64,000 nt of DNA, taken from positions 5,642,001-5,706,000 of the forward strand of contig CM074520.1 in NCBI GenBank assembly GCA_037379345.1, given 5' to 3'. Source of the DNA: Perna viridis. Its lineage: Eukaryota. A model generated the notes under the pieces. It made no database searches. It was not told the DNA's origin and saw only the letters and a list, made by a program, of their open reading frames with translations. Within the stretch, counting starts at the first letter, position 1. Each line of letters starts with the position of its first letter. A program made the position numbers and the translations under genes. Positions 23,840 through 49,600 of this stretch are shown here, one piece after another.

Positions 23840-24035
23840 TTAAAGGTGTGAGGTCGAGAAATGGACTCTTAATCAAGGTTTTTGATTAATCCACCCAAGC
23901 TTGTAAAACTAATATTGAGTAATCTCTTTCTCATTCATACCAATTAAGTCCACTCAGCCTGTAATAGAGTATTATGAGCACTGCTTAGTTCTTGGGTAAT
24001 TGACACCACTGAGCAATTTTGTCTATAAATCCTTT
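23840..24035 (+). promoter_or_regulatory. Putative promoter of cluster gene A
   Basis: TATAAAT at 24024-24030, AGGTGTGA at 23844-23851, several TAAT cores. Confidence 0.4.
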
Positions 24036-24879
24036 ATTTGTTAATAAGCTGGCATACGCTTCTCAAATATAACTCATTGAACACTGAACGGTAGAAGCTA
24101 ACATAGTCTAATATATTTGTTTTGGTGACCAAACCTATCTTTTAAATTAAACTATTCATGAGAAGGATATACATGTATTAAAATGAGGATCCCCGATAAG
24201 CAAACGAACATACAGACTGACGAACGGGTAAGCAATGTCTAAAGAAACATGCTTTCTAGATAATTCTCGGGTGGTTGGAACCCTCTTTTATTGGAATATA
24301 TTTGTATGCATAACTATGACAAGAAATGAGCATCTATAAGTTTTGTGTATCCGCCCCTAATTTGTTCAACAACATGATGCATAATTTAGTAGTACAGTAT
24401 AGCTAATGAGTCAAGTTCTGTAAAATTACCAATTAACATAAGTTTTCATGGGTTTTTGCCTGAATTTGAATCAATCTTAAGTTTTAAAAAACACGAAAAC
24501 AGTTTCCGGCGTAGAGACGAACATAGATGGTAAAGAGAAATTGTATTCATAGGAACACTTTTTAAAAGTATCAAGATTTCAGATATGACGCTGAAATAAG
24601 TGTGAAGTTTCCATTTTCTTTATTTGTGAAATTTCATATATCTCGAGTTGATACAGCACAATATACTGTTCGTGTTACAATGGTTGAATCAGATCTTAAT
24701 CATTCCGAAGACAAGTCGATTATTCCTTTGGGTTAGTCTAAAATGTCAAGTGTTCTTTTTTGTGTGTCGATGATATACTGCTCCTGGGTAAAATTGTTTC
24801 TATGTTGTCGAATCCTTGGGGGATATTTATCTTCTTTACATCGTAATCATGTACTTAATATTTGGTTTTGTTTTTGCAG

Positions 24880-25992
24880 TTGAATTGGAACCATCCAGAG
24901 ATGACGGTGGACAAGGCACAGAAATCACTGCATCTATCCATTAGCTCACCCGACATCACAGCGTATTCTACGGCTAATCTGAACTTTTCCATGGAAATCA
25001 ACCCAGATAGTCTAACAAACGATACCGAAATTGGTGAACTGATTCAAAATATTGTTTTAAGCAGTGACGATAACATATCCGATTTCGATGACGCTATGTC
25101 AACAGATTCGGACAATGAAAATGTTCCCGAAATTGATTATCAAGAAGAACTTCTTTCGCGGTGGTATTACTACGCAAGCTTTGTGTACCAGAAAGATTTA
25201 TCGAACAGAGAGATCGATGGTTGTGAGAACCCCGACGCATCACAACTAGTTGGCGGAATTATTAACACAACAGAAACAGACTCCCCGAGGGACAGTGATA
25301 CTACATTTGCAATTGATGACACTTGTGACAAACCGAACCGCCCAAATTCAGAAAATAGCAGCATTGAACAACAAGTTACAGACGATTTGTTATCAAAGAC
25401 ACACTATCTGACGTTGGACTTTTCTGAACTTGTCAACGAGTCTTCCGTTTCCGAAATAAAAAACTTTGTTCCTAGAATGACAGATGACAATGAACCGTGT
25501 GTTGGAAATACAGAACACTGTGATCCGACACTGAATTCTGCAGATGTCAGTGCAGATCCTATTTTTTTATCTTGTGGAGATCGTACAATGTCAGTCATTG
25601 CATCCTCTTCTATATGTATGGATGAATTTAGTCTTGCAGATTCCGAACTAGATCCAAGTGAATTGATGCCTAATAAAAAGGTACACATTCTTCGACGAAC
25701 AACGACTTTATACAATCTTAACGCTACCAATCATCAGCCTATTACTAATTCATCAAAGACTTCAAATCGTTTGTTAAAAGCAATGAAATCTGTCAAACGA
25801 AGCCTGACTCCTACACGGAGGGTGAACAGTAGATTGTGTAACGATAACGATAGCGACGGACAAGAGCTTGCATCTCCATCTCAAGATATACAGTTACACG
25901 ATAGGCGTACTGTAGTAAGAAAACTCAGGAAGTTTAGGGACAGTTTCCGGCGTAAAGACAAACACCGAATACAGACTCTGGCTATGCTTTGA
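24880..25992 (+). CDS. Cluster gene A: uncharacterised acidic, disordered protein with conserved C-terminal helix and TLAxL end (terminal exon)
   Basis: 1.1-kb ORF after the acceptor tttttgcag (24879). Ends DRRTVVRKLRKFRDSFRRKDKHRIQTLAML. AATAAA at 26064. Possible in-phase upstream exons 24183-24227 and 24657-24731 (uncertain); otherwise start at ATG 24901. Confidence 0.85.
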   Translation: MNWNHPEMTVDKAQKSLHLSISSPDITAYSTANLNFSMEINPDSLTNDTEIGELIQNIVLSSDDNISDFDDAMSTDSDNENVPEIDYQEELLSRWYYYASFVYQKDLSNREIDGCENPDASQLVGGIINTTETDSPRDSDTTFAIDDTCDKPNRPNSENSSIEQQVTDDLLSKTHYLTLDFSELVNESSVSEIKNFVPRMTDDNEPCVGNTEHCDPTLNSADVSADPIFLSCGDRTMSVIASSSICMDEFSLADSELDPSELMPNKKVHILRRTTTLYNLNATNHQPITNSSKTSNRLLKAMKSVKRSLTPTRRVNSRLCNDNDSDGQELASPSQDIQLHDRRTVVRKLRKFRDSFRRKDKHRIQTLAML

Positions 25993-26876
25993 ACATAAAA
26001 AGATTTGTAATTTATTAAGAATTTGTTAGATGTAAAATTTCTCATTGTTCACTTAATAGTGCTAATAAATCTTGAACTATCAATTAGTCTTAGCTCATGT
26101 TTTCAGTCCTTTAAAAGTCAGTTAGCAATGCGTCGTCTGACTCCATGTATACATGTACACTAAGTAAAACCGAAAAAAAGATAATACGTGAATATGAACC
26201 GTTCAGTCAGATTCTGAAAGAAACACAGTATACAGATAACGAACGAACAAAACCTTCATTAACTGACGAATTGAAAAGAAGATGGGGTATAATTTTTGGC
26301 CTACAATTGCTATATTTTGAATAACCCAATACATATTAGAAAGACATCGCATCAATGTATGTTACCATATAAAACATGTTTAAACTATGTGTTTGTTTTT
26401 ATTATTACTATTTTTTTTGTTTTTTTGTTTTTGTTTTTTTGTTGTTTTTTTTTTGTTGTTTTTTGTTTTATTTGTTTTTTTTGGGGGGTCCTGTCCGTTG
26501 CCTTGTTATGCTGTGGATACGCATTTCGCCTGGTACAATTTCATACGGTGTAACAGTGATAAAACCAAAAACAACAATCGTACACTGTGGTTTTGCCAAT
26601 AGGTCAATTAGGACTACTTTTTGATGGGACACTGGGTCACAAAAAAATTTCACTGCGATTATAATACAATAGGTGGACTTAAAATTGAAGAATAGAATTA
26701 CGAAAACAAAAGGGGGTACAAGCATAGGTATATACTGTGATACAATACGAGAATATAATTATGTTATGGTGACAAATGCAGACGTAAATAAGAGAGGTGT
26801 AAAGGTACTCAAAAATCATGTTGGAAGTATGAGTTAGGATGCATGGGGAACGAATAGAAAGTTTTAAATTAATTCG

Positions 26877-27891
26877 ACTACCGGCCGCTGAATGGAACTC
26901 GATCAATCTGTGATCAAAATCAATTTTGTGTACATAAAATCAAATTCCGTCATAACAAAATCATTTTTGTCGTACAAAATTATGTTATACAGATTTGTTT
27001 ATGATCACTTCAATTTTGTGAGACAAAATTCAATTTTGTGCGACAAAAGTCTATTTTGTGTCACAAAATTCAACTTTGTCTATTTTGTGTCACAGAATCC
27101 TTTGGATATGCAAATGAATTCTCTCTCATTGCGATTTCTGTAAGGCGGCCTCTCATTGGATGTAGTAACCGCGGGTCTCGCAGGTTTCCGATTACTTCCA
27201 GCAAGGGAATATCATATGGTTGATGCACTTTTCTGCAAGAGTTATACTTTATTAGGTATTACTTACTTTTTGCAGAATAGCTTATCACCCATATGATATG
27301 TCCTTGCCCGAAGTAATCGCAAGACCAGTGGTTACTATATCCAATGAGAAATCTTCTTACAACATCGCGATGAGAGAGTTCATTTGCATATCCAAAGGAT
27401 TCTGTCAACTAATTTGCATACAAAATTGACTTTTGTGACACATAATTGAATTTTGTCTCACAAAATTGACACAAAAGTGAATTTTGTTTTTAATTGCACG
27501 CAAAAGGGATTTTGGTATGACAGATTTCAATTTTCTGAACGCAAAGTTGAATTTTGTGACAAAATTTAATTTAGTCATAATATTTCTCTGTTTTTTTATG
27601 CACATTAGTTCATGGAATCCAAACTAAACTAATTCCATACAAAATTGACTTATGTTACCCAATATTCAAATCAGGTAACAAAAGTAAAGTTTTTGATACA
27701 AAAATAAATTTTGACATGACAAAGGTAACTTTTGTCCACTGACAGATTTCTTCGTTTACAAAATTAAATTTTGTAGTATGTTATAAATTTTGTTAATCTC
27801 AACTCATTTTTTGTTGAACAAAATTCACTTTTGTCTGTACAAAATTGAATTTTGAGTACAAAACCACAAGAGTCCCATCCGGCGCCCCGTA
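26877..27891. mobile_element. Foldback/MITE with AT-rich subterminal repeats and internal inverted arms
   Basis: Diverged TIRs taccggccgctgaatggaactc / gagtcccatccggcgccccgta. Many acaaaatt.aattttgt units. Internal inverted repeat cagaatcctttggatatgcaaatgaa (about 27092) / ttcatttgcatatccaaaggattctg (about 27380). Confidence 0.75.
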
Positions 27892-27894
27892 TCG

Positions 27895-28900
27895 ATTCAA
27901 TTCAATTATTGAAACAAGAAAATTATGTAAACAGTCAACATTTTGTGTCTTCATAGACTTTAAAAAGGCTTATAATTGGGTTAATAGAAATTTATTTTTT
28001 ACCAAGTTGGATGAACTTGGATTAAGTTCAAAGATGATGAATGCTTTATATGCTATATAATATAAAGTTCAATCTCGTGTAAAATTGAATTGTAGTATGA
28101 GACTGGGTTAATGTGTTTTCAGGACTACAACAAGGATGTATTATATCACCCTTGCTGTTTAATATTTTTATTAATGATCTTGTAGATGAGATTAAAACCT
28201 TGAATGTTGGTGTTAGATTAGACGATGCTATTGTCTCTAATCTACTATACACAGACGACATAGTGCTTTTATGTGAAAATGATTTACATAGAATATTAGA
28301 TATTTTAAACCAATGGTGTCAACGTAATTATTTAATTGTCAATATAGCAAAGTCTAAAGTTGTTCATTTCAGACGACAATCAATGTCTAAAACAGGTTTT
28401 TTTTTTTAATGGCGATAAGATGGAATTGGATAAATATACATACCTTGGATTAGTTTTAAATGAATATTTGAATTATGAATATATGGCTAAAACTGTAGCT
28501 AAGTCTGCAAGTAGAGCATTGGGTTTATTGAGTATAAAGCACATGGTGGTTCTGACTATTCTATTTTTACAATACTTTTTGATACTATGCTGATGTCTGT
28601 CATTGAATATGGTGTCTCAATATGAGGCTGTGGCGAATTTTTTAAAAGTATTAATGCAGTTAAAAATAGAGCAACGTGTTTCTGTATGGGGGTTGGTAAA
28701 TATACCTCAAATCTTGCATTATATTGTGATATGGGCTGGAAGCTTTGCATAGTGAAACAATGGTCAAGTATTTCTATAATGTGGTTACGATTTATAAAAA
28801 ATGTGTAATGACAGATTGAATCAGAAAGTTTTTTTTTTTTCTGTGAGCCTACAGACATTGTATCAATCGAATTAAAAAAAAATTAACTTTAAGAGTCCAT
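27895..28900 (+). pseudogene. Degenerate non-LTR retrotransposon (CR1/L2-like) reverse transcriptase fragment
   Basis: Frameshifted RT motifs VFIDFKKAYNWV, GLQQGCIISPLLFNIFINDL, LLYTDDIVLL (YADD variant), YTYLGLVL. Confidence 0.92.
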
Positions 28901-30259: not shown

Positions 30260-31983
30260 TCATAATGTTGCGAGTGTGTGAAGTCGTCGTAAGTCTTTTC
30301 GTCGGAAACTTTCCCGAAACCTGTGTAGTTTTCTTGCCACGGCTTGTTTGTCGTGAACCTGGAAACCTGATATTGCGCATTTCTTTGATGTGGGTCTTAC
30401 ACAGAACTCTTTGGGATGTTGTAAAGCATCGGAGTGGGCAATATCACTTTTAGTTTTTTTCTTCAGTCCTTGTTTCACGTCTTTAATCGCTTGAACGAGC
30501 TTAGGGAGCTTTGCTGAGTACTTTTCCTTTGCATGTGCCACTTTCTCCGTACACACAGGGAATATATCGTTTTCTTTGGTTTGCGCTATAGTCTGTAGAG
30601 CATCTGTTTCTATACCGACCACGTCTTGGCGAAATGTAGATGGCGCAATCGTAGACAAAAAGTCAACAGATAAACATCGGTTGTCGTCGTTCTGGTAACG
30701 CCGGAGATAATTCCTATGAAGAACAGTATCGCGATTTTCATCGATTGACCATGTTTCGGCTTCGGTCAAATTCGTTTTCCCCCTGGTACTTATTGACCAT
30801 TTTGAAAAATCAAGTTTGTCTTGCACCATTGTCGAAGAAGCACAAGGAATAAAATCATGTATCATTGTAGATTGAGCCCGTGGAGTTTTTACGTTCGTGC
30901 TAATGTCATCTGAGAGCATAGTTTCTCCTGAATAATCGATCATTGTAGAACTTGCCATTGGAGCCAATCTTAGTTTAGCAGGCGGCAATTTTTTCGAGCC
31001 ACTGAATAGCGATCGTCTAGCGTTTTGTCGTCTGAATGTGCCCCTGCAAAATTGAGCTCCACCTTTGGCTTTACTATCAAGACAATCTTCGGCTTCAGGT
31101 CTTCGTGTTAATATTATTTCTGTCGATTTGACCAAGTTATTGTCTTGCGTGAAATCAGTCCAATCATTCAGTGACGTGTTGACAAGGGTGTCTGACTCAT
31201 CAAAAGACATGCTCAAATTAGTGACTCTTGTGAGAGACTCAATTTTAGAGACGGATGATGGTGTCACTGGACAAGGACTATTCTTTGCCATCTGTAAAAG
31301 AAATACAAAAATGTATTAAAGAGTGTAAAAGTTTAAGACAAAGACACGTTACAGTAACGAGCTTCTACAACTTAACTGTTTATAGAACCATTTGATAAGT
31401 CCTATTTATGTCAACGTATCTTTTTAAAGGCTTAGGGTTTCTTTGGGGGGGATGGGGGGAGAGGGAGGTCTTTTTTTGTCGATCAGTATCAAAAGGACTG
31501 GCGTTTTTTGTTTTTTGTTTTTTTGTTTTTTTGTTTGTTTTTTTTTTTTTTTTTTTTGTCATTGTACAAAATCTTGACTAGAATATTATCTATCATATAT
31601 TTTTACTATCGTTATTGTATACTTACCACATTATAAAATAGTTGTGATCTTGGCCTCGATTTCAATGCCTTAGTAGAATTTTTCAGCGCTGGAAAAGAAT
31701 AAATTGTTATACCTTAAAAGCATATTGCAATTTTTTTTTAAATGTCTAACGTTTGAACAAAGAGCATGAAGAATATGGCTTGTGAAGTGAAACACGACAA
31801 CTAAATCTTGTACGACTAATAAAATAATACATTATCGGTTTTCAGGATGATTGAATAAAAAAATTCAGATATACGTTTGAATAAAAACAGATGTTTGAAC
31901 AGAAATTTACATATACGCAACGTGTAGTATAAGAGTAACTAGATCTAAGAAAACTTACCTTTTGGGCTGAATGAGAGCTTCAT
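30260..31983 (-). CDS. Cluster gene B: uncharacterised disordered protein, about 372 aa
   Basis: Exons 31983-31959 (MKLSFSPK, phase 1, GTAAGT), 31688-31627 (phase 0, GTAAGT), 31291-30260. Ends DKQAVARKLHRFRESFRRKDLRRLHTLATL. Three STM[IV] motifs. TATAAAAA at 32085-32078; AATAAA at about 30177-30172. Confidence 0.88.
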
Positions 31984-32077
31984 GGTATAAGTTGAAAGTT
32001 GTATTAAATTATTATGTCTTGAAAAAGAATTAGTCAAATTTGTAAAGTGTCATAGTTTTCCAGAAATATATACCCCC

Positions 32078-32345
32078 TTTTTATAGGTTTTAACACTTAC
32101 TAAGTTCGTATTACTCTAACACCTTTCGAAAATGCTTAATTAAGTACATTATAGTCAATAATTGGAGATGCTAGTTTTTACACCTGTTATAATGTACCTA
32201 CATATTTTGTTCCTGCAATTACACCTTAATTAATCTGTTAATTGATCGAAAAGAACCTCGTTACAGGAGTTAATTAGGACCTTAGATTTTGTATTGTTGG
32301 CATGGAGGATTTTTACACCTTTAATAAGTGAAATTTACACTCTCC
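32078..32345 (-). promoter_or_regulatory. Promoter of gene B: TATA box plus four T-box-type half-sites
   Basis: TATAAAAA, then AGGTGTTA (32117-32124) and AGGTGTAA (32178-32185, 32219-32226, 32313-32320), all on the sense strand, with TAATTA cores between them. Confidence 0.6.
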
Positions 32346-32969
32346 ATAAATTGCGTACAATATGAAAAATATTCCTTGAAGTAATTTTGTCACTTTTTAA
32401 AAAGATACACTGAACTAAATAGAGATGAAAGAAAACAAAAAAACACAGTTATGTCGGTCATTATCCGTAAAATACATAACAGGAGAACCAGAAAATAAAC
32501 AAATGTAGTAATAAACAAATAATCTACGAACAAAATATGAACAATCCAATGAATAAACAAAATAAACAGTGAATCGATATTTTAAGATCAAAATATAAAT
32601 GTTAATTATTTTCGCAGCATCCATATCCAATGCAAGAACATGAATTTGTCTTAATTACAGTATATTAGCAGAAATAAATATAACGAAGCTATAGAAATGC
32701 ACCCCACAACGATTAACAAGAAACACAATTGTAATGCATGCACAATTAGTATTTTGGTCTGCATCATTTTGAAATTAATCTCTAACAATTTGAATGCCAT
32801 TTATAACAACTTAACGTTTTTTTGTCTCAGTCTGTAGACCCAGTTACCGGCTAAACGTTTGCCGAAAACATAAAGCATCGGCCTAAAAATGCAACAATTT
32901 AATAATAAAATAGCATTTTTAATCGTTCTTTGAATGCAAGAAAACAATTGAGAGGTTTTAATTTTCGAT

Positions 32970-33660: not shown

Positions 33661-33714
33661 GTCATTCCTTACCTTTCAATGCCAATAAAATGTACAGAAT
33701 ACAACTATCACTAT

Positions 33715-34095
33715 ATGATGGGAACAGAGTAAGGACTAACACACCGTGATGTGAAAAGAAAAGGACTAACGCACCATGATGGGAACATACATACACACCG
33801 TGATGGGAAAAGAAAAGGACTAACACACCATGATGGGCACAGAATAGAACTAACACACCATGAAGGGAACAACACCATAATTGAAACAGAATAGGACTAA
33901 CACACCATGATGGGAACAACACCATTATAGAAACAGAATAGGACTAGCACACCATGATGGGAACAGACTAACATAACATACCATGATAGGAACAGACTAA
34001 CACACCATGATGGTAACAGAAAATGACTAACACCCTATGGTGAGAACAGAATATGACTTACACACCATGATGGGAACAGGATATAGGACTAACAT
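33715..34095. repeat. Minisatellite, about 30 bp unit
   Basis: About 12 degenerate copies of aggactaacacaccatgatgggaacagaat. Confidence 0.9.
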
Positions 34096-35500: not shown

Positions 35501-35504
35501 TCTT

Positions 35505-36583
35505 TAGCTGTGTATAATGATGTTTTGGGGCCTGTTCTTTCGTTGTAGCTGTGTATAATGATGTTTTGCGTGTATAATGCTGGTTTTGGGCCTGCTCTTT
35601 CGCTGTAGTTGTGTATAATGTTGTTTTGGGGCCTGGTCTTTCGCTGTAGCTGTGACGTTTTTGGGCCTGCTCTTTCGCTGTAGCTGTGACGTTTTTGGGC
35701 CTGCTCTTTCGCTGTAGCTGTGACGTTTTGGGGCCTGCTCTTTCGCTGTAGCTGTGTATAATGACGTTTTGGGGCCAGCTCTTTCGCTGTAGTTGTGTAT
35801 AATGTTGTTTTGGGCCTGCTCTTTCGCTGTAGCTGTGACGTTTCGGGGCCAGGTCTTTCGCTGTAGCTGTGTATAATGCTGGTTTTGGGCCTGCTCTTTC
35901 GCTGTAGCTGTGACGTTTTTGGGCCAGCTCTTTCGCTGTAGCTGTGACGTTTTGGGGCCAGGTCTTTCGCTGTAGCTGTGACGTTTTGGGGCCAGGTCTT
36001 TCGCTGTAGCTGTGTATAATGACGTTTTGGGGCCAGGTCTTTCGCTGTAGCTGTGACGTTTTGGGGCCAGGTCTTTCGCTGTAGCTGTGTATAATGATGT
36101 TTTGGGGCCTGCTCTTTCGCTGTAGCTGTGACGTTTTGGGGCCTGCTCTTTCGCTGTAGCTGTGACGTTTTGGGGCCAGGTCTTTCGCTGTAGTTGTGTA
36201 TAATGTTGTTTTGGGCCTGCTCTTTCGCTGTAGCTGTGACGTTTTGGGGCCAGGTCTTTCGCTGTAGCTGTGACGTTTTGGGGCCAGGTCTTTCGCTGTA
36301 GCTGTGTATAATGATGTTTTGGGGCCAGCTCTTTCGCTGTAGCTGTGACGTTTTGGGGCCAGCTCTTTCGCTGTAGCTGTGACGTTTTGGGGCCAGGTCT
36401 TTCGCTGTAGCTGTGTATAATGTTGTTTTGGGGCCAGGTCTTTCGCTGTAGCTGTGACGTTTTGGGGCCAGGTCTTTCGCTGTAGCTGTGACGTTTTGGG
36501 GCCTGCTCTTTCGCTGTAGCTGTGATGTTTTGGGGCCAGGTCTTTCGCTGTAGCTGTGTATAATGATGTTTTGGGGCCAGCTG
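35505..36583. repeat. Homogeneous minisatellite of interspersed 34-bp and 41-bp variants
   Basis: gttttggggccaggtctttcgctgtagctgtgac (34 bp) and a longer variant containing tataat (41 bp), about 29 units. Confidence 0.95.
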
Positions 36584-36917
36584 TTTTGATTTGTTGTTTA
36601 GTTGGTTGGCTGCCTGTTTTTTGCTTGTCATGGACAAAATCTGAATTAAATAAACAGTAACATCAATAACATGACGAGTACTTCAGCTTCGTAGTTCACG
36701 ATTAGAAGTTTAAGAGCTTTTCATGTGAAAGCATTGTAGATCTACGAAACGAATTGTTATATTGATTTGTCGTATAAGTACATGTATTGTACAAGTAGCC
36801 TTGTTGTGAAACTCTTGTTATTCGAGGAGAGAAAACACAAATTTGTTTTATATTATTTATTTACAGTGTTGTAAACATAAAATAGCACTATATTGTGAAG
36901 AGAATTTGTTACAATGG

Positions 36918-38342
36918 TCATAGATTCGCTAAAGTACAAATGTCAGCAGACTTGTTGCTCCAGCGCTCTTGAAAATATCGAATTTTCCTAATCATTTCCA
37001 CCTTTTCTAAACCTGACAAAGCCAGAAAGGGGTTGCTATTCTTTTTCTCTACTGTCCCCCCTTGTTTATTTTTCCTAGAAAACAAGCGCCTAAGTCTGGA
37101 AATTGGTTTAGAACGAGCATGCGTGGTCGTTTCTTTTCCGGGCTTTTTGTTGTTCAAGTTCAAACTGCCTTTCAACTTCTTCGGCGTAAGACGGAGCTTA
37201 GCTCTGGTGCTTGTTCTTGGGACTCCCTTGTGTGTATTGTAAAAAGATGTTTTTGCATACGCAACTTCGTCTACGACTTCTACACTGACAATGTCTCTGG
37301 TGCTACAGTAACCAATCGATGATAACATTCCAATTTCGTTCTGTGCAATTTCTTGCTTACTAGAGAGAATGTCTTCTTCGCATGAACTCGAGTCATCGTT
37401 GCGACTAATGACGAAAGTCTGGTTGATCTTGGGTCCTTGGAGTGAAGTACATGGAATGCTGTCATTTTGAATGGATGAAAAGCTTTCACTTATACCCGAA
37501 TCTTTTCTACTAAGAGTCATCATTATTTGGTTCTTGTTTTCACCAGGAGATTTTATCATGGTAGAGCATGCTACCGGTTTCGTAATATTTGACTTTCTTC
37601 GTTTGGAGTATCTACCTTGTCTGTTGCGGTTTCGACTTTTTGGAGTATGGTTTTCTTCACATCCTACAACTATACGCTCAAGGATATCTAGATCGATGCC
37701 ATCGAAATTAGTAAATGAATCATCAATATTTGAGTCAAAACTCGCACACTTATTAATTTGCTTGATTTCCGTTGGGTATCCAATCGGTACACAATGTGTC
37801 TCATCTCCAGATGACGAAGAACCAGAAATATTGTAGGAGTCTGAACAAATACTGTCGTTGTATAGGTTGAAGAAATCGTTTTGGCAGTCCTTCGCTTGTA
37901 ATATTGATAAGGATCCGAGTCTTGGAAGTTTCATTTTCTTTGAGGGCCTTTCTACGTCCAACTGATCACTCATCTGGAATTAAAAATAAATGTGATGGTT
38001 AACCGATAATTTATTATGAAACCAGTATATAAATTTATACTAATGAATCGTATAGATGATACATGGAATCAAGAAGTGTATATTAAATGTGCTATATAAA
38101 AATTTGAATTTAGAAATTCCCATATTTTTTTTAACTATATAACAAATGTAATGTTACTGATGGTACTATTATATTAGTATCACGAAACAATCTGGTTGTT
38201 ATCGAAACATTTTACATCTTTCAGCATTTTGCATAAAGACAAAGGATGCTGTTTGCGCAAATTAGAAGTATACAGAAGGTTTAACTGTATTCCATACCTG
38301 ATAAAGTACACGAACCACCTGGTCTGCTTTCACAATCTCCAT
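36918..38342 (-). CDS. Cluster gene C: uncharacterised disordered basic protein, about 366 aa
   Basis: Coding exons 38342-38298 (MEIVKADQVVRVLYQ, phase 0) and 37973-36918. Non-coding first exon ends at 38575; TATAAAAA at 38646-38639. Ends EKVEMIRKIRYFQERWSNKSADICTLANL. Contains PVACSTMI, FYNTHKGVPRTSTR and DSGISES. Confidence 0.86.
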
Positions 38343-39929
38343 TTCTGAAAGATATATCTAAAACGATAATATGAAAAAGAACGAAATTAAGAAATATTGC
38401 AAACCTTAAGATGTAAGATCGACTGCTTACAACCAATTTTAGTGAAACAATGACGTAAATCTGAAAAGAAAAAAAAAACATCGGCTGAACATCTAAGATA
38501 TCTTTACAATCAATCTTCAAAGAGCCTGGATTAACTTTTCCCGTTTTGGAATTAATTTCGAATAAATATTTTACCTTTAACCCAAAGTGCAGATCTTTAT
38601 CACAGTAAGATCACATATTTTAGCCGTGTTACATACGGTTTTTATACCTCCAGAGATCATCTTCACACCAAATACATATTGCCTCGAGATTCAGCCCTTT
38701 GTCTTATCGAAATTTAACACGTAATTATCAAAACAATTGGATTGCTATTCAAAACATTGTAAAATAATAATTGATTCTTCCGTTTTGTTTACTTTATGAG
38801 AAGTTCATTAAAAGATTCTGATTATTTTAATTACATCAATTACTTTTATTAATTATAATAATGTTATTCTATTTCTATATCACGTTTCATTTCCCACATT
38901 TTTTTCTAATGTGTTGTTGAATGTCACACCTACGTAATGCTAACAATTTTTCAACGTGTAAAAATGATTTTGTTTGTAATTTATTTTAAGACTAATAGTA
39001 TTTTCACTATCAGAAAATAATTTTGAAAATGAGAAGTCTGTGAACAACTATATAGAGTTATCTCTCCTTTCACGACATACTTTTGTTTACATTCCAGCTT
39101 GAAACAACCAAGTTTGGTCGCCTGAACTTGTATACCTTTTATTCAAACATTATATAAGTCTTTGTCTTCAGATTAAATGCATTCTTTTTCCATTAATTTA
39201 AACATGAAGAATCGTCTAAAAAAGCGCATTAAAACAGTCACAATTCGTGTTCCTATTCTATCAACAAAATTCTGTTAAATATTATGTCATTTCTGATTAT
39301 TCCTGCTATACACCGCAGTAGTTAAACCAAATCCGTAACTAAATCTAAAGCATAAAACCGAGAGACATAAGACAGAACAAAGGAAATGGAGACCACAGCA
39401 ACCAATAACAAGTAGAGACGGAATGAAAATTACTAATATTAAACTAAATCAAGTGTGTAAATTTTTGCATGTTTGTGAGAGACCGGAGTTCGTATTTCGG
39501 TTATGATAATGCTATTCTTTACATTTTCTGAAAAAAATAGAATAATGAAATAAAAGACTCATTACCACATAGCCTTTGGAGATGGTAATCATTTTCACCA
39601 TATCTTTGATTTATTTTTTTTTAAATGATAAAATTTTGCTAAAATTGTTAGTGAAAAAATAACATTTTTTTTTATTATAATCCTTTACTTGCTCCGTTCA
39701 CGATCAAGAAGCAATACATAACATATATTAGCGATCTGTTCACGATTATTCCTATGGCTTCACAGAGTGACGTTGTTGAAGAACCTGAGTCCGAGCTCAA
39801 TTTAGTCAAGTTGAAAATTGTTAATGTGAGAAACTTCAAGGTTGCATGACAATTTGTACAAATAATGCAATATCGAGACACAAATTGTATATGTTACAGT
39901 GCACTATATTCGTATCCATTTAGTGCAAT

Positions 39930-40730
39930 TCAATTGATGTTAAACATAAGACAAACGCCATGACTTCTGATTCCGTATTGTCAACTTTCCATTCATCTGC
40001 GTCAACATCTCTTTGGCACCTGCGAATCGGGTTCTCACGCGTTATGCCAGAGCTTTCGTAAACTACACGGTCTTTTTTGTACAGCGGTAGAGTTCTTACA
40101 ATTAAACTTTTGGAACAGGGTTGGTTGCTGCGCGATTAAAGTTATCATGTCAATTTTAAAAGTTTTATGGTCGTCATCATGAACTCATGGATTGTTATGG
40201 TGTATCCATCTGCACATCGTGTTTTGTTCACCGTGTCATACACAGTTTTTCTTTACTCTTTCCAAGTCTAAATAATAATAATAGTACTCGTACATCTTTT
40301 CTTGATTAAGATTTCGCACTAGAAATATGCAGTCTTCATATTAAAATTGATGACAAAATAGATGACTTTGATTTTCGTATTGTAAATTTTCCATTTCTAG
40401 ATAGTGATATCGCTGAAGCACATCTTACGGTATTTACATTTCACAGCTGGTCGGTTTCGCTCGTATTTGCAATAAAGTGTAAGGTTTCATGAACGCAATA
40501 AATTCTCATAGAAAAGCTCATGCATCAATACCACAAACTTCTAAAAACATTTTTTTCACCGTTACAAAATATTTATGCAAAAAGTATAACAGCACTAACA
40601 GGTTCTTAATTAAAAATGATGTTGCTCACCCAGTTCTTTACGGATATGTGGTGTCTTAAGCACATTCTTCCAAACAAAATCCGATGGATTTTTAACTGCC
40701 TTTAATAGATTTATTTGTTAAGGATATTTT
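39930..40730 (+). pseudogene. Two decayed fragments of a Penelope-like retroelement RT C-terminal region
   Basis: Translates with frameshifts as DKIDDFDFRIVNFPFLDSDI...SYGIYISQLVGFARIC (about 40350-40470). A second, more decayed copy lies at about 39945-40210. Confidence 0.65.
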
Positions 40731-43120
40731 CTATCTTTTTACCTTGTTTTCACAAAAAGGGATTTTCGCCCCCTAATTGCATCCCTACGAAAAAACTAAG
40801 CCATTTTTTAATATTGCACTAAATCTTGCCTAGTTATCATTTGACGTTAACCTGTAGTGACCAATTATTTCTAATGCTAGTCGGTTTAATGGTACATTGT
40901 ATTTGCATTCATTTATACGTTCTGAGCTACTTTTCAGGATCTGCGAGCATTCTTTAAGTGGATTCCTATTTTGTCTATATGGTTTAGGTTGAAGTATTTC
41001 ATGGAGATAATGAGAGAATTTTATGGTATTTTCGTTGTTTCAGTTCATTTTTTACATTACATTAATTTAAGCGCACCACAGACATGCAGTCAAGAGATGT
41101 TGGTCACTAATGTATCTTGGTGTCGTTATTTTACTCTTTAGTAATAAAAAGATTGAACTTACATTTTTGTCAGTTTTTTTTTTGACGATTACTGAGAATT
41201 ATATACCAACTGAAGTCAGTGCAACGGCCATGCTGCTTATTTCAGTTTGATTTCATTACTCGTATCAATGCATGTACCTTTGTTTCGAGAAAGGTCAGAG
41301 TTCAAGGTGCTAGTATTTGATACATTAGTGTACCTTAAACTATCATAGGAATCTGTATACTACATATTTAACCACAGTCTTGCCTTTTTAAATATTTAGT
41401 CTTAAAATATTGAATACAATCATAATTTTGTTGTTTGTTTTTACTACCTGCAATTGTCGTTTTTAGTTTTCTTTAAAAAAGAAACAACTCAAAACTCAGT
41501 AGAGATTTACCTCCATTCCATATTTTTTTAACAAAATTCCATGTCAAGCTAGCTGATTTTTCTATCTGGCAGATAAAAATGTTGTATTTCATCAACAAAC
41601 ATTACCATTGGGGCATACTTATTTTGTTACATACTACTATGCATAAAACAGTTGTTTCTTTTAACAATACATGTTGTAGATACTATTAAATAATTGGGAA
41701 GTCCAATTGTACCGTCAATTCAGTATCCGTTTTCCAAGTTATTGAGGAGAATTCAGTTTTGTTGACATTGCAGTGTTTTTGTTTTTGGTTTTTTATGGGG
41801 GGTAGGGGGGTGGTTAATGTCATTTTCGCAGTGTGCGATTATTTTCATGAGTAATATTTTTCTTATAAGAGCTTGTTTATATCCAACGATTTTCCGAGTT
41901 TTTCTTTATCAATTTAGATCGAAGACCAGAATTGATATAGCAGTCGCAGGAGCTTCCAGATTTATAAAGCCTAATAGCATCTCCTTCTTTATCAGAATAG
42001 TGCATTAACCATTAACAACAATAAACTTGTATTTAGATACATTTTGATTCGACCCCCGTACTTTCCTTTTTTTCTTTCATGCATTTTTTACAATTTTGAT
42101 GATTATTCGAGGCATAAAAATTCAAGCGATCGATATAAATTGATTCAGTACATGATTACTTGATTTAGGGTCATTTGTGTTCATCGATTTTCGACTTTTT
42201 AAAAGTTGGTTCTGTCCACTTGTATTCGACCTTTTTTATGGGTTTATTTTTGTCTATTAGTATTCGACCCTTTAAAAGGCTTTGTTTTTTTTTGTTTTTT
42301 TTTGTCCATTGGTTTTCGATGTCTATTTTTTTACGTTTGTTCTCGTTTTTTTTTTTCATCATTATTTTAAATATTGAGTAAACTGTGTTTCCCATGATAA
42401 AACTTTTCAATGACTTGTCAAGAAAGTCGGCTGTTTGGTTTTAGGACTTTGAATTTTTAGTTTGTAATGATTGCACAACCAACGAGTAGAAATCACTCGA
42501 ATGAAGAAATTCAATTTTAAATATTTTATTTACATAGCATAGCACTGATTCATAATTTGTCAATAAATTAATTATTTTACAATAATACTATACAAAACAG
42601 TACACATTATCTGCATAACCACAACAACAAAAACAAACAGGAAAGAAAGAAAGTGTGAAGAAGTGAAAAGACAGAAATGCCATCTTAACATATTGCCATA
42701 TTGCACTTTATCATAACATGAGGTCGCTTGTGTCCTATGTACATACATAAAAGCACTAAGAATTAATGACTATCTCATTGTCCCAACTCTCTACTTCTGC
42801 TATCTTACTCAATCTCTCAAATAAAATATTACAAAGAATGAAAACAAGCGACTTACTTTTAAAAAAGTACAATTTTCAATACACGTTATGAACTAAACTG
42901 ATAAAAATATTTTTTTCAATTATTCTTATATTAGCTTTAAAATACTCCTTTCTCAACGCCAAGCTCACACACTACAAACACTTACATCAAATTTCATGCA
43001 GTTTTTAACATTCATATATCTACCCGTAAAATTGTGTAAATACAAATAATTGTCTTTGTCAAATATCACATGTAAAGTTCGTGAACACATTTGTGGATAT
43101 ATTGTCACTAATTTAATGCA

Positions 43121-46100
43121 CTACAGGTTAGCAAGGGTGTGGATCTGTGTTGTGTCTTTCTGACGGAAGCTCTCGCTAAAACGACGCAACTTCTTGGCAA
43201 CAGCACGCTTGTCCATGAGGTGGACCTCGGGTGAAGGAGTCATAAACAGCTTCTTCTTGGTAACAGGTTCACTGTGAATAGATGATGGTCTACGCTGGGG
43301 TGTAGATGCAATGTTCTCGGTGCTCTTAGGCTTGCGGCGGAAACGGAACAACTTCCAGAGTGGTATGATGCCCTTGGGTTTCTTGAAGAGTTGGTTTTCT
43401 TTTGGTGATGTTGACCGGACTGATGAAGGCGGTGCTGGTGGCATACACTGGATCTCGGTCTCACTGACTGGGCTGGCCCTGGATGAGTAAGGTGAGTTGT
43501 TAGGAGCAAAAACACCAGTACTGCTGTAGCTGTGTGGACTGTCAGTGAGGAGGGAGTCAATCATGGCTTGAGTGTTGTGTGTCTCGTTACTGTTTGGTGG
43601 ACTGGTGTGACTACCACTAGAACTAGACTTGCCTGGGATGGCTGGACGATCATCTAGGGATGATGAGTGGGTACTAGCTGAAGAATTGGGAACACTCTGG
43701 ACATTGTCATTCTCTGAAGTCAGGACGCTGACCATGTCTGGCATTGATGCTCGGCGGGCTTCCATGGAACTACCACTGGACTTGTTACCATTCAGGTCAG
43801 TACGAGTGCTGGTACGTGGCAGGGTCTTTGCCTTGTTGTAGAAAGTGACTTCTTCGTACAGGCTGTCAGTGACAAGGTCTTGCTGCTGGGTGGCAGGTAC
43901 AATCATGGATAGGGTGTCATTGCAGGTAGTCTCGACTAGACTGGTACCACAGCTGGATGGAAGGACTTTCTTAGTAGGCAGAGGTGGCTTGCTGGAGATC
44001 CTGTTGATGTTGCGGTAGTAGGATTCTTCAAGTGGCAGCTCTTCAGAACCCTCTTTGATGGACCAGCAGTACACAGAATCCATGTCATCAGTAGAGGAGT
44101 GTGGTCTACAGGATGACGAAGTGGGATCTTCAATCATGGTAGAGGAAGCCCTAGGTATGGAACTGGTACGGTGCTTACTACTGCCACTGCTCTGTGATGA
44201 TGGAGAGAAGTCTTCTATCATGGTTGATGATGCCTGAGGGATGGAGATGCTGCGACGACTACCCTGTGATGAACTAGTACGGTTACGCTGAGCACGACTG
44301 ATGCGCTTTACCCTGTGATGGCGAGGTGATGGTGATGAGCAGTTGGAACTGGTAGAGCGAGTGCTAGAACGAGGTGGTGGTGCAAAACCAGGTGGGATGT
44401 ATTCGGACTCACAACCAATGACTTCTCTAGTGAAGAGCTCCTCAGTGTCAGCTGCAGTGTTGTTGTGGTAGATTACTGGTGTGTTGGTAAGGCGGGCTGT
44501 CATGTTGTTAATCTTGGTCTGACGGTCAACAGTGAAGTCACCATAGTAGTGGAGTCTGGAAAGCAGCTCTTCTTGACGGTCGTCTATGTCTGGTACACAC
44601 TGGTTGTCGTCTGAAGACTCTGACTCAGTAGACCTAGGGTAACCGCTGGAACCATTACTAGCATTGCTGATGTCAGAGGATGATGGCTCTGGTTGGTCGA
44701 TGTTTGGTACCAGGTTGGTTGGTGAGACTGGCTTTGGTGATGGTATGTAGTTACTGTTATTGTCGATGATCAGGGTCATAGCCGAGTCTTCGTAAATGCT
44801 CTCGCTGCTGAGTGAGTTGATGGAAACCAGAGGCCCCTGAAGCATCTTCTGCAGTAGGACATCTTCGTCACAGGAAGTGGTGTCTAGGCAGGTGATGGCT
44901 GGTGTGTTACGCTGGAGGAAGGAAGGAGTTGGTGGATTGTTAAGCTGCTGGTTGGTTGGGTACTCGCTTGGTTCCAACCCAATATCTGAGATGAGGGAGT
45001 TGAACTTCTGGTTTATCTCATCTATATCTGTCTGCAAGGCAGTCTCTTGTCGTTTAATGGCTAACTGTAAAATAAGATTAATATTGGATTAGATATAAAG
45101 AAACTTTAAAAGATCACATTCTTAATTTAAGTTCTGAATTTCTTTGAAATTCAGATCAATTTTGGTATACAGACATCTTACAAGCATTCAATTTGCTACT
45201 ACAAGTAAATATTAATGTAGATGAATATTCTTCATTCAGGTCAGTTAGTTTGTATTATAAAAAAATTTAAAAAATATTATTATAAGAAATGAAATACAAA
45301 TAAAATAACTATACATAAATTTGAAATACAAATACAACATGTATTCAATTATACTAAAAAATCACCATATTTTTATGTACATGTAGTTCACAACATTTTT
45401 TTGTATTTTAAACTCAATTTGGACATAATGCCCTGATCAATAGTGTAAGATGAACCTACTAAGTCATTCCTGTACAAGTTTATAAGGATTGATATTTTGT
45501 AATAGAACATTTTTATACCTAAAGTGAAGACCATACACTACTCTTCTGATATATCAAGAAGAAACATCAAAGAAATAAACTATTGAAGTTTCTGGTTCTA
45601 ACTATGGCAGGTAAGTAGAAAATTCAATTTTTGCCTCTGCTGAATAAAAGCTTTCAATAAGACTTCTACAGGCAAGATTCATGACCATCTTTAATATTTT
45701 TAAATCTTGGCTTTTATATCGAAGTAACACTTAAAACCAAACGTGTGTAATTCAGGTAAGATATGGCCATATGACCTTTATATACTTTTAAATAAAATGT
45801 CCATCAAATCTCATCTCTATAATACAAGGGATGAAACTCTTAATATATACCCAGGTTGCTTGGCAAGATAACTCCTTAGTTGTAAAGAGATAAAGGCAGT
45901 GTCTGAACCAGAAATTTCATTTAACAAAATGAAGTTAATTGACCTACCATATCAGCTTGAAGCATGAGGTACATCTCTTCATGATCAAGATGGTCTGAAA
46001 CATCGGAGTCCATACCAGTTTCCATCCAGTCTGAAAAACATAAGGGAGCATAACATAAGTCTAGAGTCACAATCAAACAAGTTGTACTAGATGTTACAAA

Positions 46101-46642
46101 AAATAACAACGTTATCCCAACTGCTACATTGTAGGACTAGTCATTTGTACAATTTGATATAGTTGCATGCACTTTACATGCCATCATACAAGTATAAATC
46201 AGAAATACCATCATTCTATCAAAGCAGATATCAATGTCCACACAGCATCTAAATCACAGTTTGTCAACAGAGTGTAATCTAACATTACATTTATTGAGAA
46301 TTTATGTGTTGTAGTTTATTATAATTCTCATGAATTTTTAAACATGTTATAAAATGTAATTGTTAAATAGTTAATGGAGTTTGATCCCTAAATTAACAGC
46401 TTGCAAATATCTGATTTATGGCATTTCATCAAGATAGAAACTTTTATGTTTTTTATCTAAATTTTCTCTGGTTAATGTAAAAAAATAATTTCACATCAAA
46501 TTAGTAATAATGCATAATGCAATACAATTGCTGTAGAAATTTTGAAGGAAGTAGAACCATTAAATTAAGACATACCCCAAAGAGAGATATACATCCTCGG
46601 AGATGATCCTAAAGAATCACTTGAATATTCATAAAAATACAT
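43121..46642 (-). CDS. Cluster gene D: longest paralog, about 697 aa, Ser/Pro-rich and disordered, with an N-terminal helical/coiled-coil segment
   Basis: Exons 46642-46576 (phase 1, GTATGT), 46030-45948 (phase 0, GTAGGT), 45064-43121, all in frame: MYFYEYSSDSLGSSPRMYISLW|DWMETGMDSDVSDHLDHEEMYLMLQADM|LAIKRQETALQTDIDEINQKF.... Ends DKRAVAKKLRRFSESFRQKDTTQIHTLANL. TATATAAAAA at 46708-46699; AATAAA at about 42530. Confidence 0.92.
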
Positions 46643-49600
46643 TTGGTGTGTAATATCCAAAACTTATTTAAAACAAAAACTTGACCCATGAACCCTTGTT
46701 TTTATATATGGTCCCATAGTTTGTGAACCATTATATCCATCTGCTGTTCACACAGCCAGCAGATTGTCTAACACCTTTTCCAGTATAATTTCATACCTTA
46801 AATCCACTTAATTTTCAAATTATCTGATGTTAAAAGTTACACCAATTAAAAAAAACACTAGTTTGTAGTTCTCATACCACTGTAATATTAATAACCCATT
46901 CATAGCCTAACTGATCTAATTGTCAACTAATTGACCACACTTCTGGGAGAATACAAAAGTTAGCCCTAATCCTATGAAGTGTGATGGCATCCATTAATTT
47001 TGGTGTCAAACCTTTTTTACCCCCATTTACAGTAACAGTTTAGGTGTTTGTTTAGTTTCTGTCAATATGCTAATCAGAGGAACTCTTTTGTAAAGAAGGG
47101 TGGAATATTACTGGTTTTCAGATTTCAATTTGATGTATTGCCTCAGAGGTTTTTTTTCTGAAGAGTTTTATCCCCTTAACAATACTTTAACCACTACTAT
47201 TTACATAGCAGTGTTTGGTGTTTTAAGACACACAAAAGATTTCTAAAAGCTGTCAGCTAAATTGTCACTATCCTTTGTGTTCTGGTAACTTCTTAATTTA
47301 AGGTGCTGTGTCTACTAAAACTTTTATTCTTTTCTATAAATTACAACAGAAGGTTCAGTAAGGCATTTTTTCATGATATAAAAAAAAAATACAGACAGAC
47401 AGATGCAGCAGAAAATTGTTGTGGACTAGTAACACTGTTACATAATGTTCCATAGTATTGAGTAGTATTGAAATTAAATACAAGTTTACAATCAATATTG
47501 TCCCATTGAATGAATGGAATTTGATATAATTTCTCAATTTATTGAAATTAAATACAAATTTACAACTAGTTTCAAGCTGTTTCTAAACCAACATTTCATA
47601 TAATGTTTTGAAAGATTACAATGGATTACATGTTAACAATCTGTTTAAAATCTTTCATTGACCCAGTTCTGATGTAATTGTGGAAAACTTTTTAATAAAA
47701 AATGTCTACAATCTGTTGATATTTCCACAGTGGGGATGACTTTGTTTGTATTAGGCTAAAGTTGGACTGATAAATTCTTACACATCATTTAATCACATTT
47801 AACTTTTAATGAATGAGTAAATCAAAGTCAATTTGTTCTGGAATTTTCTCCAAAGGGATGTCTTCTAATTTAAATTTTAAATAAGGTTAGCTTATTTGCA
47901 TAGTATTATTAGCTGTATGATAAACTACAGGAGACCAAAGAAAAAACTTCCTGTCACAGGACTTAAAAATACTATGAAAGTACTTCATACCAGGGATGCA
48001 GGACAGATGTTCACCAAATCTGCACTTTGAATGGACTTATTTCAAGGTGACCCAATATTGCTGAGTCAACAGAAATGCTAAGCAGGTGAAAATGATATGT
48101 GGCTGGAAATTGTCAATGGACAAAGGACATGGGCACAAGACACACCTTATTGATGAATATTTGATGAAGTCCATGACAATTCCTTCACCCTAACACAAAT
48201 ACTGATAGACCATTGGCGGATTAAAAAAAAATCTTAAATTCAGATTTGCTTAACTTACGATCACTAGAAATTGAAGATTTGAGGAAAAACTCAGGATTTG
48301 GGGAAATTATCAACCTGATTTTTGTTATAGTATAAAACCAAGGCCAGGTATGATTTGTTTCCAGAAACCTAATAGAGTTGGAATTTGGATAAAAGTCCTA
48401 GTACAATTATCAATAAATGTTAGTCTCTATAAAATTTGGAATAAAGTCAACACCATTAAAGTAATTTCATACAAATTGATTTCTTGAATTAAATCTTGAG
48501 TAATATATCTTACACATTTACAATTAAGATAGAATTTTAGATAGAATACAAACAAATGCTGGAAATTTACCAAATTTTATAATAATAAGACTTGCATATT
48601 TCTACATTTAAATACTTTTCCTATTTCATAACTTTATGAAATAAAATGAAGTAAACTTGCTCTACCTGTAAACTGTGCCACCAGCCTCTGCATCTATTAG
48701 TAATTAATGTGATGTTGTTCCTTTGAAATTTACCCAAGGTATGATAGTTTTTACAGGTATGCACAGGTAAGTTACAGGTAAGAGTCAATTGGATGTTAAT
48801 TGTTTTCTCTTTCATCCTTAATTAACTGATGAAATATTTAAACTCAGTAAATTCAGTAGCCCTATAATCTCTCTCTAATAAAAATTTCAGGGGGGTTTAA
48901 TTGTTTAACAAGTGTCTGTTAAATTCATTAAGGTAAAGATGTGACTTAACCATGCTGAGACAAATAATTAGATAACTGGACTTTAGATTATAGATATGGA
49001 AATATCATTCTAAAATTTTATAACTCATCACTTATGCATTTGGTTGATGTATGAATTTGAAATTTTATTCAAGAGGCAGAAAACAGAATACTAAGTTGAT
49101 ACAGAAGAAGAAAACCACTTAATGATCAAATGTAAGAATGAACTGCTATTAAACTAAAAATACCTTGTACAACAAAGAACAATGGATCCTGAAGGTAATC
49201 ATAAACATTGCAGCTCTCCAAAGACCTACCCAACACCATTATAATAGGCTTCTATCGCCACATTTACAATTTGTCTTCATGATGAAACATGTTATATACA
49301 GTCACATGTTTAATTAATGAGATTTGTATGTAGAGATAGGGGACTGTTAAAAAAACTAATGTAATTCCAAATCAAAACAATTCAGTAGATAAGGGACAAT
49401 ACTTGAATCTTAGCAGCTGGACACAGGTGTAATAAAACAACAGTATACTATTGTCCAGTCCTGTTGTATACATCTACTTTATCTGGGTGTTCAAACATAG
49501 TTTGTTTACATTTTGTTCTTTCCAATTGAATTAAAATTGGACACAGATTGATTCCCAATCCACTTTAAAAAGATCTAGATAATTGGATAGGTATTTTACA

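Follow-up and report, generated by a model that had tools for sequence, protein, structure and literature searches.

Dact/Dapper proteins are Dishevelled-binding vertebrate adaptors with a leucine zipper at the N terminus, a middle part rich in Ser and a PDZ ligand at the C terminus. Ligands of the Polo-box follow the consensus Ser-(pThr/pSer)-(Pro/hydrophobic), in which -5 is Pro or Phe and -3 is hydrophobic (PMC2920843), and the linker of MST2 carries multiple TM motifs that are autophosphorylated and serve as docking sites read by MOB1 and by the FHA domain of SLMAP, whose consensus is E/D-G-pT-M-x-R/K (PMC5663475). Here we analyzed a 64-kb stretch of the Perna viridis genome (CM074520.1, assembly GCA_037379345.1; hereafter the window) that contains four genes, which we call A, B, C, and D, of a mollusc protein family. 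By architecture, Dact/Dapper is the closest described kind, but the family differs from it in motif set, in tail and in its mollusc-only range, and shares neither sequence nor hidden Markov model (HMM) similarity with it.

The four genes lie in long open frames of 343 to 655 codons in DNA of 31-39% G+C, within a window that is AT-rich and has 0 N. Each of them closes with a basic helix followed by Phi-x-T-L-A-x-L-stop, and the four C-terminal strings quoted in a preliminary description of this DNA are all exact and stand at the ends of intact open reading frames (ORFs). Overall, A-D are 19-28% identical in pairs, with 14 invariant columns, 7 of which fall within the last 23 residues; when the last 45 residues are aligned, K, F, K, T, L, A, and L are invariant. 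A profile of these 45 residues, run in six frames against the whole 723 Mb assembly, recovered A-D at E values of 4e-23 to 2e-20, together with a 367-codon ORF on contig C4 that ends in TLAVM (E 1e-4) and is unlinked to the cluster, and beyond these the search gave no other credible match. Because only five loci genome-wide carry the tail signature, it is real and specific and no chance feature of the genome. The claim that the four ORFs are true paralogues is borne out, and A does run opposite to the others, on the plus strand. The count of four holds for the window, but the C4 copy makes a fifth, unlinked paralogue.

Relatives of gene D are found widely among bivalves and gastropods. D is 82% identical to its 703-residue Mytilus edulis orthologue (P0002), its orthologues in bivalves and Patella match with E values from 0 down to 1e-40, and full-length relatives occur in scallops, oysters, Tegillarca, Solemya, Mactra, Dreissena, and Patella. 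Of 1.84 billion representative proteins, 58 matched a profile of 13 long forms at E <= 0.001. Every named one belongs to a bivalve or gastropod (Haliotis, Littorina, Babylonia, Batillaria, Aplysia, Elysia, Biomphalaria, Bradybaena, Potamilus, Pinctada, or Mytilus), and this HMMER search reached no non-mollusc protein among its named matches. A region-restricted word search with the scallop C terminus returned family members only.

The preliminary description had recognized neither a globular domain nor a named family, and our searches agree. Pfam gave no domain in 11 members (A-D at E up to 1, seven long forms at E up to 0.1), the profile search of the PDB gave chance matches only (E >= 0.2), and the ESM Atlas returned whole-protein scores of at most 0.84, with no usable match for the C-terminal third. 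A literature search found no paper on six RefSeq gene ids of the family and nothing relevant for its tail or motif strings. The TLAxL-type end is present in all 51 complete members examined from bivalves and gastropods, and A-D are, as first proposed, conserved in short motifs only. We are highly confident that this is a real, mollusc-restricted family conserved only in its motifs; it is undescribed so far and, as far as the searched databases show, limited to bivalves and gastropods.

Database entries call its members uncharacterized, mucin-5AC-like, mucin-4-like, serine-rich adhesin for platelets-like, flocculation protein FLO11, or secreted beta-glucosidase adg3. High Ser/Thr content is the only likeness to such proteins, and the family has no mucin, adhesin or glycosidase domain and no tandem proline/threonine/serine (PTS) repeats. 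The aligned N termini of the long forms are acidic or helical, with no hydrophobic stretch resembling a signal peptide, and Tandem Repeats Finder (TRF) detected no coding tandem repeats inside A-D. Identity as a mucin, an adhesin, or FLO11 was rejected on these three grounds, and the mucin-type names in RefSeq and UniProt are artefacts of composition.

An AlphaFold2 model of the M. edulis D orthologue, made with a 13-row alignment, has a mean predicted local distance difference test score (pLDDT) of 44 and places 542 of 703 residues below 50, in line with the earlier description of these proteins as disordered; the family is predicted to be mostly so. Helices are drawn at residues 35-74 (pLDDT > 90), 210-243 (~68), and 675-702 (55-70), and the part from 675 to 692 is amphipathic. 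Within the first helix, L or I stands at each seventh position five times, which is the pattern of a leucine zipper, and the five heptads cross the junction of D exons 2 and 3, from the end of exon 2 into the start of the terminal exon (45064-44978). The zipper is absent from A, B, and C. Besides the helix and tail, gene A keeps helix 2, GCE, and Phi-x-R-x-x-T; gene B keeps three S-T-M motifs, WSI, and S-x-I; and gene C keeps GCE, one S-T-M motif, P-R-T-S-T-R, and RRLF (long-form blocks are listed in Table 1).

We next consider how the four genes are related. A maximum likelihood tree was built from 521 columns by a quick method that gives support only from the Shimodaira-Hasegawa-like approximate likelihood ratio test (SH-aLRT), and the disordered sequences align poorly. 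In it, the long forms follow the species tree, and within their pteriomorph clade all short forms group together (aLRT 90). A is sister to B (aLRT 95), and both have Mytilus orthologues (P0032 and P0033 for A; P0031, P0068, and P0105 for B), and in the database search A- and B-type proteins were met only in Mytilus species; no orthologue of gene C was found in the databases searched. Pinctada also has short forms, and the C4 copy lies near them and pairs with a 402-aa metagenome protein that carries no name. From orthologue to orthologue the path is ~1.8 substitutions/site long for A and B and 0.18 for D, so over equal divergence the short forms evolve about 10 times faster than D. A and B are only 34% and 31% identical to their Mytilus orthologues by tblastn (41-42% over kept alignment columns), and synonymous sites would therefore be saturated for a ratio of non-synonymous to synonymous rates (dN/dS). 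Compared with contigs of another individual, A and B together showed 5 non-synonymous and 0 synonymous differences and D showed 0 and 2, tiny numbers that give only a hint of faster evolution in A and B.

The neighborhood of the cluster helps to date it. A multi-exon MRPL28-like gene (Ribosomal_L28) adjoins A at 13371-21201 on the plus strand of the window. On M. edulis OY782963.1 an A-type gene also adjoins MRPL28, which lies just upstream, and the D orthologue is found ~70 kb off on the opposite strand. The order MRPL28-A...D is thus kept, and the cluster is older than the split from Mytilus. In M. edulis a very large HEPN_DZIP3/nSTAND3/ankyrin gene stands just downstream of the A-type gene (L011:16817-22380); the corresponding place in the window showed no such gene. 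The idea of an old tandem expansion needs correction, for the four are not equals: D is the ancestral long form, single-copy and slowly evolving across Mollusca, and A, B, C, and the C4 copy are short, fast derivatives that fall within the pteriomorph clade and have lost the zipper and varying subsets of the motifs, though never the C-terminal helix and tail.

The large exons of A-D each start right after a pyrimidine tract and AG, and all are in phase 0. B, C, and D had also been credited with a TATA box, two short exons and one large terminal exon. That scheme is matched by orthologues for both short exons of B, whose translations (MKLSFSPK and LKNSTKALKSRPRSQLFYNV) parallel the N terminus MKFTFSPKVKSLEALKLRERQRSKLYIDQV of the B-like Mytilus coruscus protein P0031, and for exon 2 of D, which was located by tblastn with five orthologues; the ATG exons of C and A and exon 1 of D are candidates only. 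The first 17 residues of M. edulis D isoform X1 have no match in the window, and the M. edulis D gene spans 35 kb. When the upstream regions of A-D were compared as DNA, no common promoter or exon sequence beyond chance was found. All exons were searched or read one by one. Contigs from four RNA-like runs of four studies, mapped to 37401-43400 only, cover 42516-43400, the 3' end and 3' untranslated region (3'UTR) of D, and leave gene C with zero coverage over 37401-39600. Reads bore out a splice junction in none of the genes, whether among the contigs over 37401-43400 or among the Logan contigs bearing A, B, and D; the latter are collinear with the genome and run into intron or upstream sequence, and so carry no splice evidence. 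The missing coverage of C and the lack of read-confirmed junctions count against our overall reading. We take A-D to be a tandem cluster of intron-containing genes of expressed type, whose structures are plausible and partly backed by orthologues.

Contig joints at 39621-40195 were considered as introns and rejected, for they sit in a high-copy repeat. That repeat (~40000-40400) is represented in each of the four runs, by hundreds of short contigs of 90-95% identity in all; loose contig ends occur at 40160 and 40213-40215. It is probably a short interspersed element, and it produces the false joints. The final ~110 nt of the D 3'UTR (42520-42630, minus strand) are nearly identical in M. edulis, exceeding the coding sequence in conservation, and contain TTTTGTA, TGTAAATAAA (a Pumilio-type element overlapping the poly(A) signal), and CAGTGCTATG, which suggests post-transcriptional control. 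Upstream of D, a long series of collinear blocks at 46900-60800 (in minus-strand order) has conserved counterparts ahead of exon 2 in the D gene of M. edulis; the blocks include a stop-free 65-codon piece at 50920-51114 (YDSKMLPKEIAEGTFNRVKNWLLFECNEEDC...) that is 68% identical to M. edulis. These blocks could be far-upstream exons of D isoforms, a separate gene, or conserved non-coding elements.

Several conserved motifs of the family resemble phosphorylation-dependent sites. In the bivalve long forms, Haliotis, and Patella, S-T-P is followed 15-25 residues on by [KR][KR]xLF, a module that we take to be a CDK-primable Polo-box site beside a cyclin-docking RxL-type motif. The block E-A-R-R-A-S-M-P-D is (near-)invariant in the 13 aligned long forms and missing from A, B, and C; its RRASMP agrees with the 14-3-3 mode 1 pattern R-x-x-pS/pT-x-P and fits a basophilic kinase site as well. 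Phi-x-R-x-x-T-x-x-x-Phi is kept family-wide and suits kinases of the CAMK/AMPK/PKD/Chk type, and K-R-F-S in the basic helix would be a further basophilic site. The family also has a repeated motif that reads S-[I/N/H]-P-x-A-[S/N/A/C]-S-T-[M/L]-[I/L]-[E/D/N]-[D/E] over 127 instances. Of 112 anchored instances, 107 have the S-T pair, and neither SS nor TT ever takes its place even though these proteins contain 2.5 times as much Ser as Thr; Pro stands at -5 in 110 of 127, Ala at -3 in 115, and M, L, I, or V at +1 in all 127, with Met in 94. As with the 14-3-3 and cyclin-docking patterns, the match of P-x-A-x-S-T-M-I to the Polo-box consensus (-5 P, -3 A, -1 S, 0 T, +1 M) is one of sequence only.

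We compared the S-T-M and S-T-P motifs with those of known Polo-box docking proteins, such as Cdc25C (LLCSpTPN), the optimal peptide PMQSpTPL, and Polo regulators like Matrimony. The likeness lies in the S-T core with its invariant Ser at -1, in Pro at -5, in residues that are small and hydrophobic at -3 and Pro or hydrophobic at +1, in the presence of several copies in one protein, and in a canonical S-T-P beside an RxLF cyclin-type motif. The family departs from them in its conserved Met at +1, in the Ser or Asn mostly found at -2, and in having no homology to a known Polo partner. Several details count against the Polo-box: -2 is mostly S/N/A/C and not T/Q/H/M, only ~40% of instances have a hydrophobic -4, the conservation of Met at +1 exceeds what a Polo-box demands, and short motifs fit consensus patterns by chance fairly easily, their deep conservation alone arguing for a function. 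We hold the Polo-box reading as a tentative one that falls short of probable. A different reader seems less likely still, be it a pThr-Met site like the TM motifs of MST2, recognized by MOB1 or the SLMAP FHA domain, or a non-phosphorylated strand ligand like the A-S-S-T of SPOP/MATH or that of the LC8 groove. In favour of such a reader, FHA domains read pThr only, Thr is invariant here, and Met follows it in the 94 instances noted above. The fixed Ala, the variable polar residue, and the S and T resemble the SPOP pattern phi-pi-S-S/T-S/T, but its fifth position (S/T) is always M or L here. MST2 offers a precedent for multiple TM docking motifs (PMC5663475), several Thr-Met sites within a disordered stretch. 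However, the family flanks, A-x-S-T-M-I-[E/D]-[D/E], are unlike the SLMAP FHA consensus: -1 is always Ser, -2 is S/N/A/C, +3 is acidic, and only T-M itself fits, so the motif was rejected as a SLMAP-FHA pTM ligand. An invariant Ser at -1 is moreover a hallmark of Polo-box ligands and not of FHA or MOB1 ligands. As an LC8 (DYNLL) T-Q-T ligand the motif is unlikely because Gln, the main LC8 anchor, never takes the Met position (0 of 127), and this candidate was rejected too. SIAH, PxIxIT, and ABBA patterns were rejected for the motif and its surroundings, as was a D-box reading of the R-x-x-L after P-R-T-S-T, since that Arg is lost in A- and B-type proteins.

The tail raises a similar choice of readings. 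A logo of the 51 complete members shows no exception to T(-4), L(-3), and A(-2), and position 0 is L, F, or M in all; -6 is I, L, or F, and -5 and -1 vary, the latter being N in 39, M in 4, T in 3, V in 2, and H and Q in 1 each. With 0, -2, -4, and -6 all conserved, one face of an extended chain is fully conserved, which suggests a strand-type C-terminal ligand such as those of PDZ domains. That the tail is a protein-binding C-terminal ligand appears to us an evenly balanced proposition, and that it is of PDZ type a possible but less than even one; position 0 is hydrophobic, Ala at -2, small and hydrophobic, is unusual among PDZ ligands, and AlphaFold2 draws the tail as a helix of pLDDT 55-70 and not as a strand. 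A scaffold or inhibitor with a free C-terminal ligand, as first proposed, would still be a reasonable reading. The basic helix and tail might otherwise form a MARCKS-like electrostatic switch that binds acidic membranes or calmodulin and is released by phosphorylation of KRFS/SF. The helix is predicted to be amphipathic and its logo (K-K-F-K-R-F-S-x-S-F) is, like the MARCKS effector domain, rich in K/R and Phe with serines in a basophilic-kinase context at its centre. Such a switch is nevertheless unlikely, as the most invariant part is the uncharged T-L-A-x-L end after the helix, which a switch does not need, A, B, and C have kept the tail but not the helix serine, and neither Pfam MARCKS nor any other HMM matches. 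A peroxisomal role is hardly credible. The sequence -ANL ends human catalase and works there as a non-canonical type-1 peroxisomal targeting signal (PTS1), and the fixed Ala at -2 and hydrophobic position 0 would suit a weak signal of this kind read by PEX5; but -1 is almost never basic (N, M, T, V, Q, H), the equally invariant T(-4), L(-3), and Phi(-6) are not required by PEX5, and disordered proteins of phosphoprotein type with 650-1500 residues and cytosolic-kinase, 14-3-3, and cyclin-type motifs are unlikely matrix cargo. The PTS1 pattern [S/A/C]-[K/R/H]-[L/M] was accordingly dropped as the main reading of the tail, -ANL being just a non-canonical variant. It is also very improbable that the whole family is an unrecognizably diverged member of a described group of disordered adaptors, such as one of Dact/Dapper type. 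The layout is the same: the N terminus has a zipper (the five L/I heptads of the helix predicted at 35-74 with pLDDT > 90), the body is disordered and rich in Ser with short conserved blocks, basic residues cluster near the end, and the free C terminus is conserved. Against this, no Pfam family, Dapper included, matched the eleven members (A-D at E up to 1 and the seven long forms at E up to 0.1), the tail is TLAxL in 51 of 51 and not MTTV, and the HMMER profile reached no non-mollusc protein among its named matches; lacking both the Pfam Dapper match and the MTTV end, the family was not assigned to Dact/Dapper. Finally, A, B, and C could be decaying or neutrally drifting duplicates, with D alone of importance. 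Their ~10-fold longer branches (A and B), the 5 to 0 excess of non-synonymous differences in A and B against 0 and 2 in D (tiny numbers), and the absence of a database orthologue and of coverage in four RNA-like runs for C would all be expected of decay. Yet in A, B, and C frames of 343-376 codons stay open within AT-rich DNA, with intact same-phase acceptors and upstream ATG exons with GT donors, intact A and B orthologues with the same motifs and tail exist in several Mytilus species, and Pinctada has short forms too, which makes decay improbable.

Taken on their motifs, the family members are somewhat more probably than otherwise phospho-regulated adaptors. The long form D would dimerize through its N-terminal leucine zipper, and its ~600 disordered, Ser-rich residues carry about a dozen conserved short motifs. 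Phosphorylation at basophilic-kinase and CDK-type sites would recruit phospho-readers, a Polo-box at P-x-A-x-S-T-M-I and S-T-P and 14-3-3 at RRApSMP, while a PDZ-like pocket would take up the free C terminus in extended form, with the adjoining KRFS helix as a phospho-switch. The zipper-less short forms might then be monomeric partial competitors or specialized versions. A far more speculative extension, which we consider quite unlikely, would make the family mollusc-specific scaffolds or pseudo-substrate inhibitors coupled to Polo kinase and cyclin-CDK in oocyte meiosis and early cleavage. The dimeric long form would be primed at S-T-P through RxLF cyclin docking, would present several S-T-M Polo-box sites, and would be parked by 14-3-3 and anchored by its free TLAxL end, with the fast zipper-less paralogues as germline competitors. 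The Pumilio-type element (TGTAAATA) at the D poly(A) site would suit translational control of a maternal mRNA, and the germline role would be like that of Drosophila Matrimony or vertebrate Emi2, of independent origin.

Two tandem arrays lie between and beside the short genes. A minisatellite at 35510-36558, with ~26 copies of a 34-bp unit and a higher-order period of 109 bp, begins ~360 nt downstream of the C stop; the ORF at 35504-36637 (minus strand, 377 codons) is a spurious product of this 34/109-bp repeat and was rejected as a gene. Between B and C, a degenerate array at 33715-34094 has ~13 copies of a 30-bp unit, with higher-order periods of 47, 54, and 83 bp.

Table 1. Features of the gene cluster and conserved blocks of the long form (window positions unless another contig is named; features called candidate are sequence readings only).
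Feature	Position	Strand	Remarks
Gene A large terminal exon	24862-25992	+	376 codons + stop; orientation opposite to B, C, D
Gene B large terminal exon	30260-31291	-	343 codons + stop; three P-x-A-x-S-T-M motifs
Gene C large terminal exon	36918-37973	-	351 codons + stop; most diverged short form
Gene D large terminal exon	43121-45064	-	647 codons + stop; conserved long form; open frame 43121-45037/45064
Fifth family member	G000:C4:13472143-13473246	-	REVEGCE, two S-T-M/L, WSL..LEECY, IPRTSTR, helix, TLAVM end
Gene A candidate TATA-like box	24023	+	
Gene A candidate ATG exon	24183-24227	+	MRIPDKQTNIQTDER then GT, phase 0
Gene B TATA-like box	32076-32085	-	TATAAAAAGG
Gene B exon 1	31983-31959	-	MKLSFSPK+G; ATG..G then GTAAGT, donor phase 1
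Gene B exon 2	31688-31627	-	..LKNSTKALKSRPRSQLFYNV; donor phase 0
Gene C candidate TATA-like box	38637-38648	-	
Gene C candidate ATG exon	38342-38298	-	MEIVKADQVVRVLYQ then GT, phase 0
Gene D candidate TATA-like box	46694-46708	-	
Gene D candidate exon 1	46594-46576	-	ATG, GT donor phase 1
Gene D exon 2	46030-45948	-	..DWMETGMDSDVSDHLDHEEMYLMLQADM; ends QADM then GT; acceptor phase 1, donor phase 0
Gene D 3'UTR	42516-43120	-	RNA-like contigs; M. edulis alignment
MRPL28-like exons	15265-15420, 16846-17007, 18437-18577, 19280-19426, 20280-20433, 21133-21201	+	62-82% protein identity to M. edulis
C-terminal helix and tail	D 43124-43213; A 25900-25989; B 30263-30352; C 36921-37010	D, B, C -; A +	D ends I-H-T-L-A-N-L
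Helix-2 motif EELLSRLHYYGDF	D 44534-44572; A 25144-25182	D -; A +	degenerate in C
REVIGCE	D 44408-44428; A 25207-25227	D -; A +	degenerate in C
P-x-A-S-S-T-M-I motifs	D 44216-44239, 44132-44155	-	two copies
P-x-A-x-S-T-M motifs in short forms	B 30938-30961, 30860-30883, 30824-30847; C 37554-37577	-	
L-P-R-T-S-T-R-x-x-L	D 43793-43822; A 25690-25719; C 37194-37223	D, C -; A +	
R-R-A-S-M-P	D 43739-43756	-	
S-T-P, then K-K-K-L-F	D 43298-43306, 43244-43258	-	
Long-form block SDGYP..DNQCVP..E..SRLQYYSDFTIDRQRKI			helix 2
Long-form block R-x-V-E-G-C-E			
Long-form block P-x-A-x-S-T-M-I			two to five copies
Long-form block SVYTWSI..LEESY-x-R			
Long-form block KPPLPP-x-K			
Long-form block S-V-I-E-P			
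Long-form block L-P-R-T-S-T-R-x-x-L			
Long-form block E-A-R-R-A-S-M-P-D			
Long-form block DSILTDSP-x-S..SSGI-x-AP-x-NSP			
Long-form block VFKVPK..PLRKLFRFRR			
Long-form block S-T-P..S-K-R-K-L-F			
Long-form block DKKAVIKKFKRFS-x-SF..IQTLANL-end			at the end of the protein

Lineage-restricted disordered families are common, so the value of this one is moderate until a partner is found; the family is new and well delimited, with an unusually clean pattern of motif-only conservation, the kind of protein is familiar, and no new mechanism has been shown or long-standing question opened. If the motif reading holds, however, the family would have been kept for several hundred million years, since the split of bivalves and gastropods, by short linear motifs and a free C terminus alone. 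Its zipper-less paralogues, which carry different subsets of the motifs and evolve ten times faster, form a natural experiment. The family gives mollusc biology a testable candidate regulator where databases say 'mucin-like', and corrects misannotations in RefSeq and UniProt.

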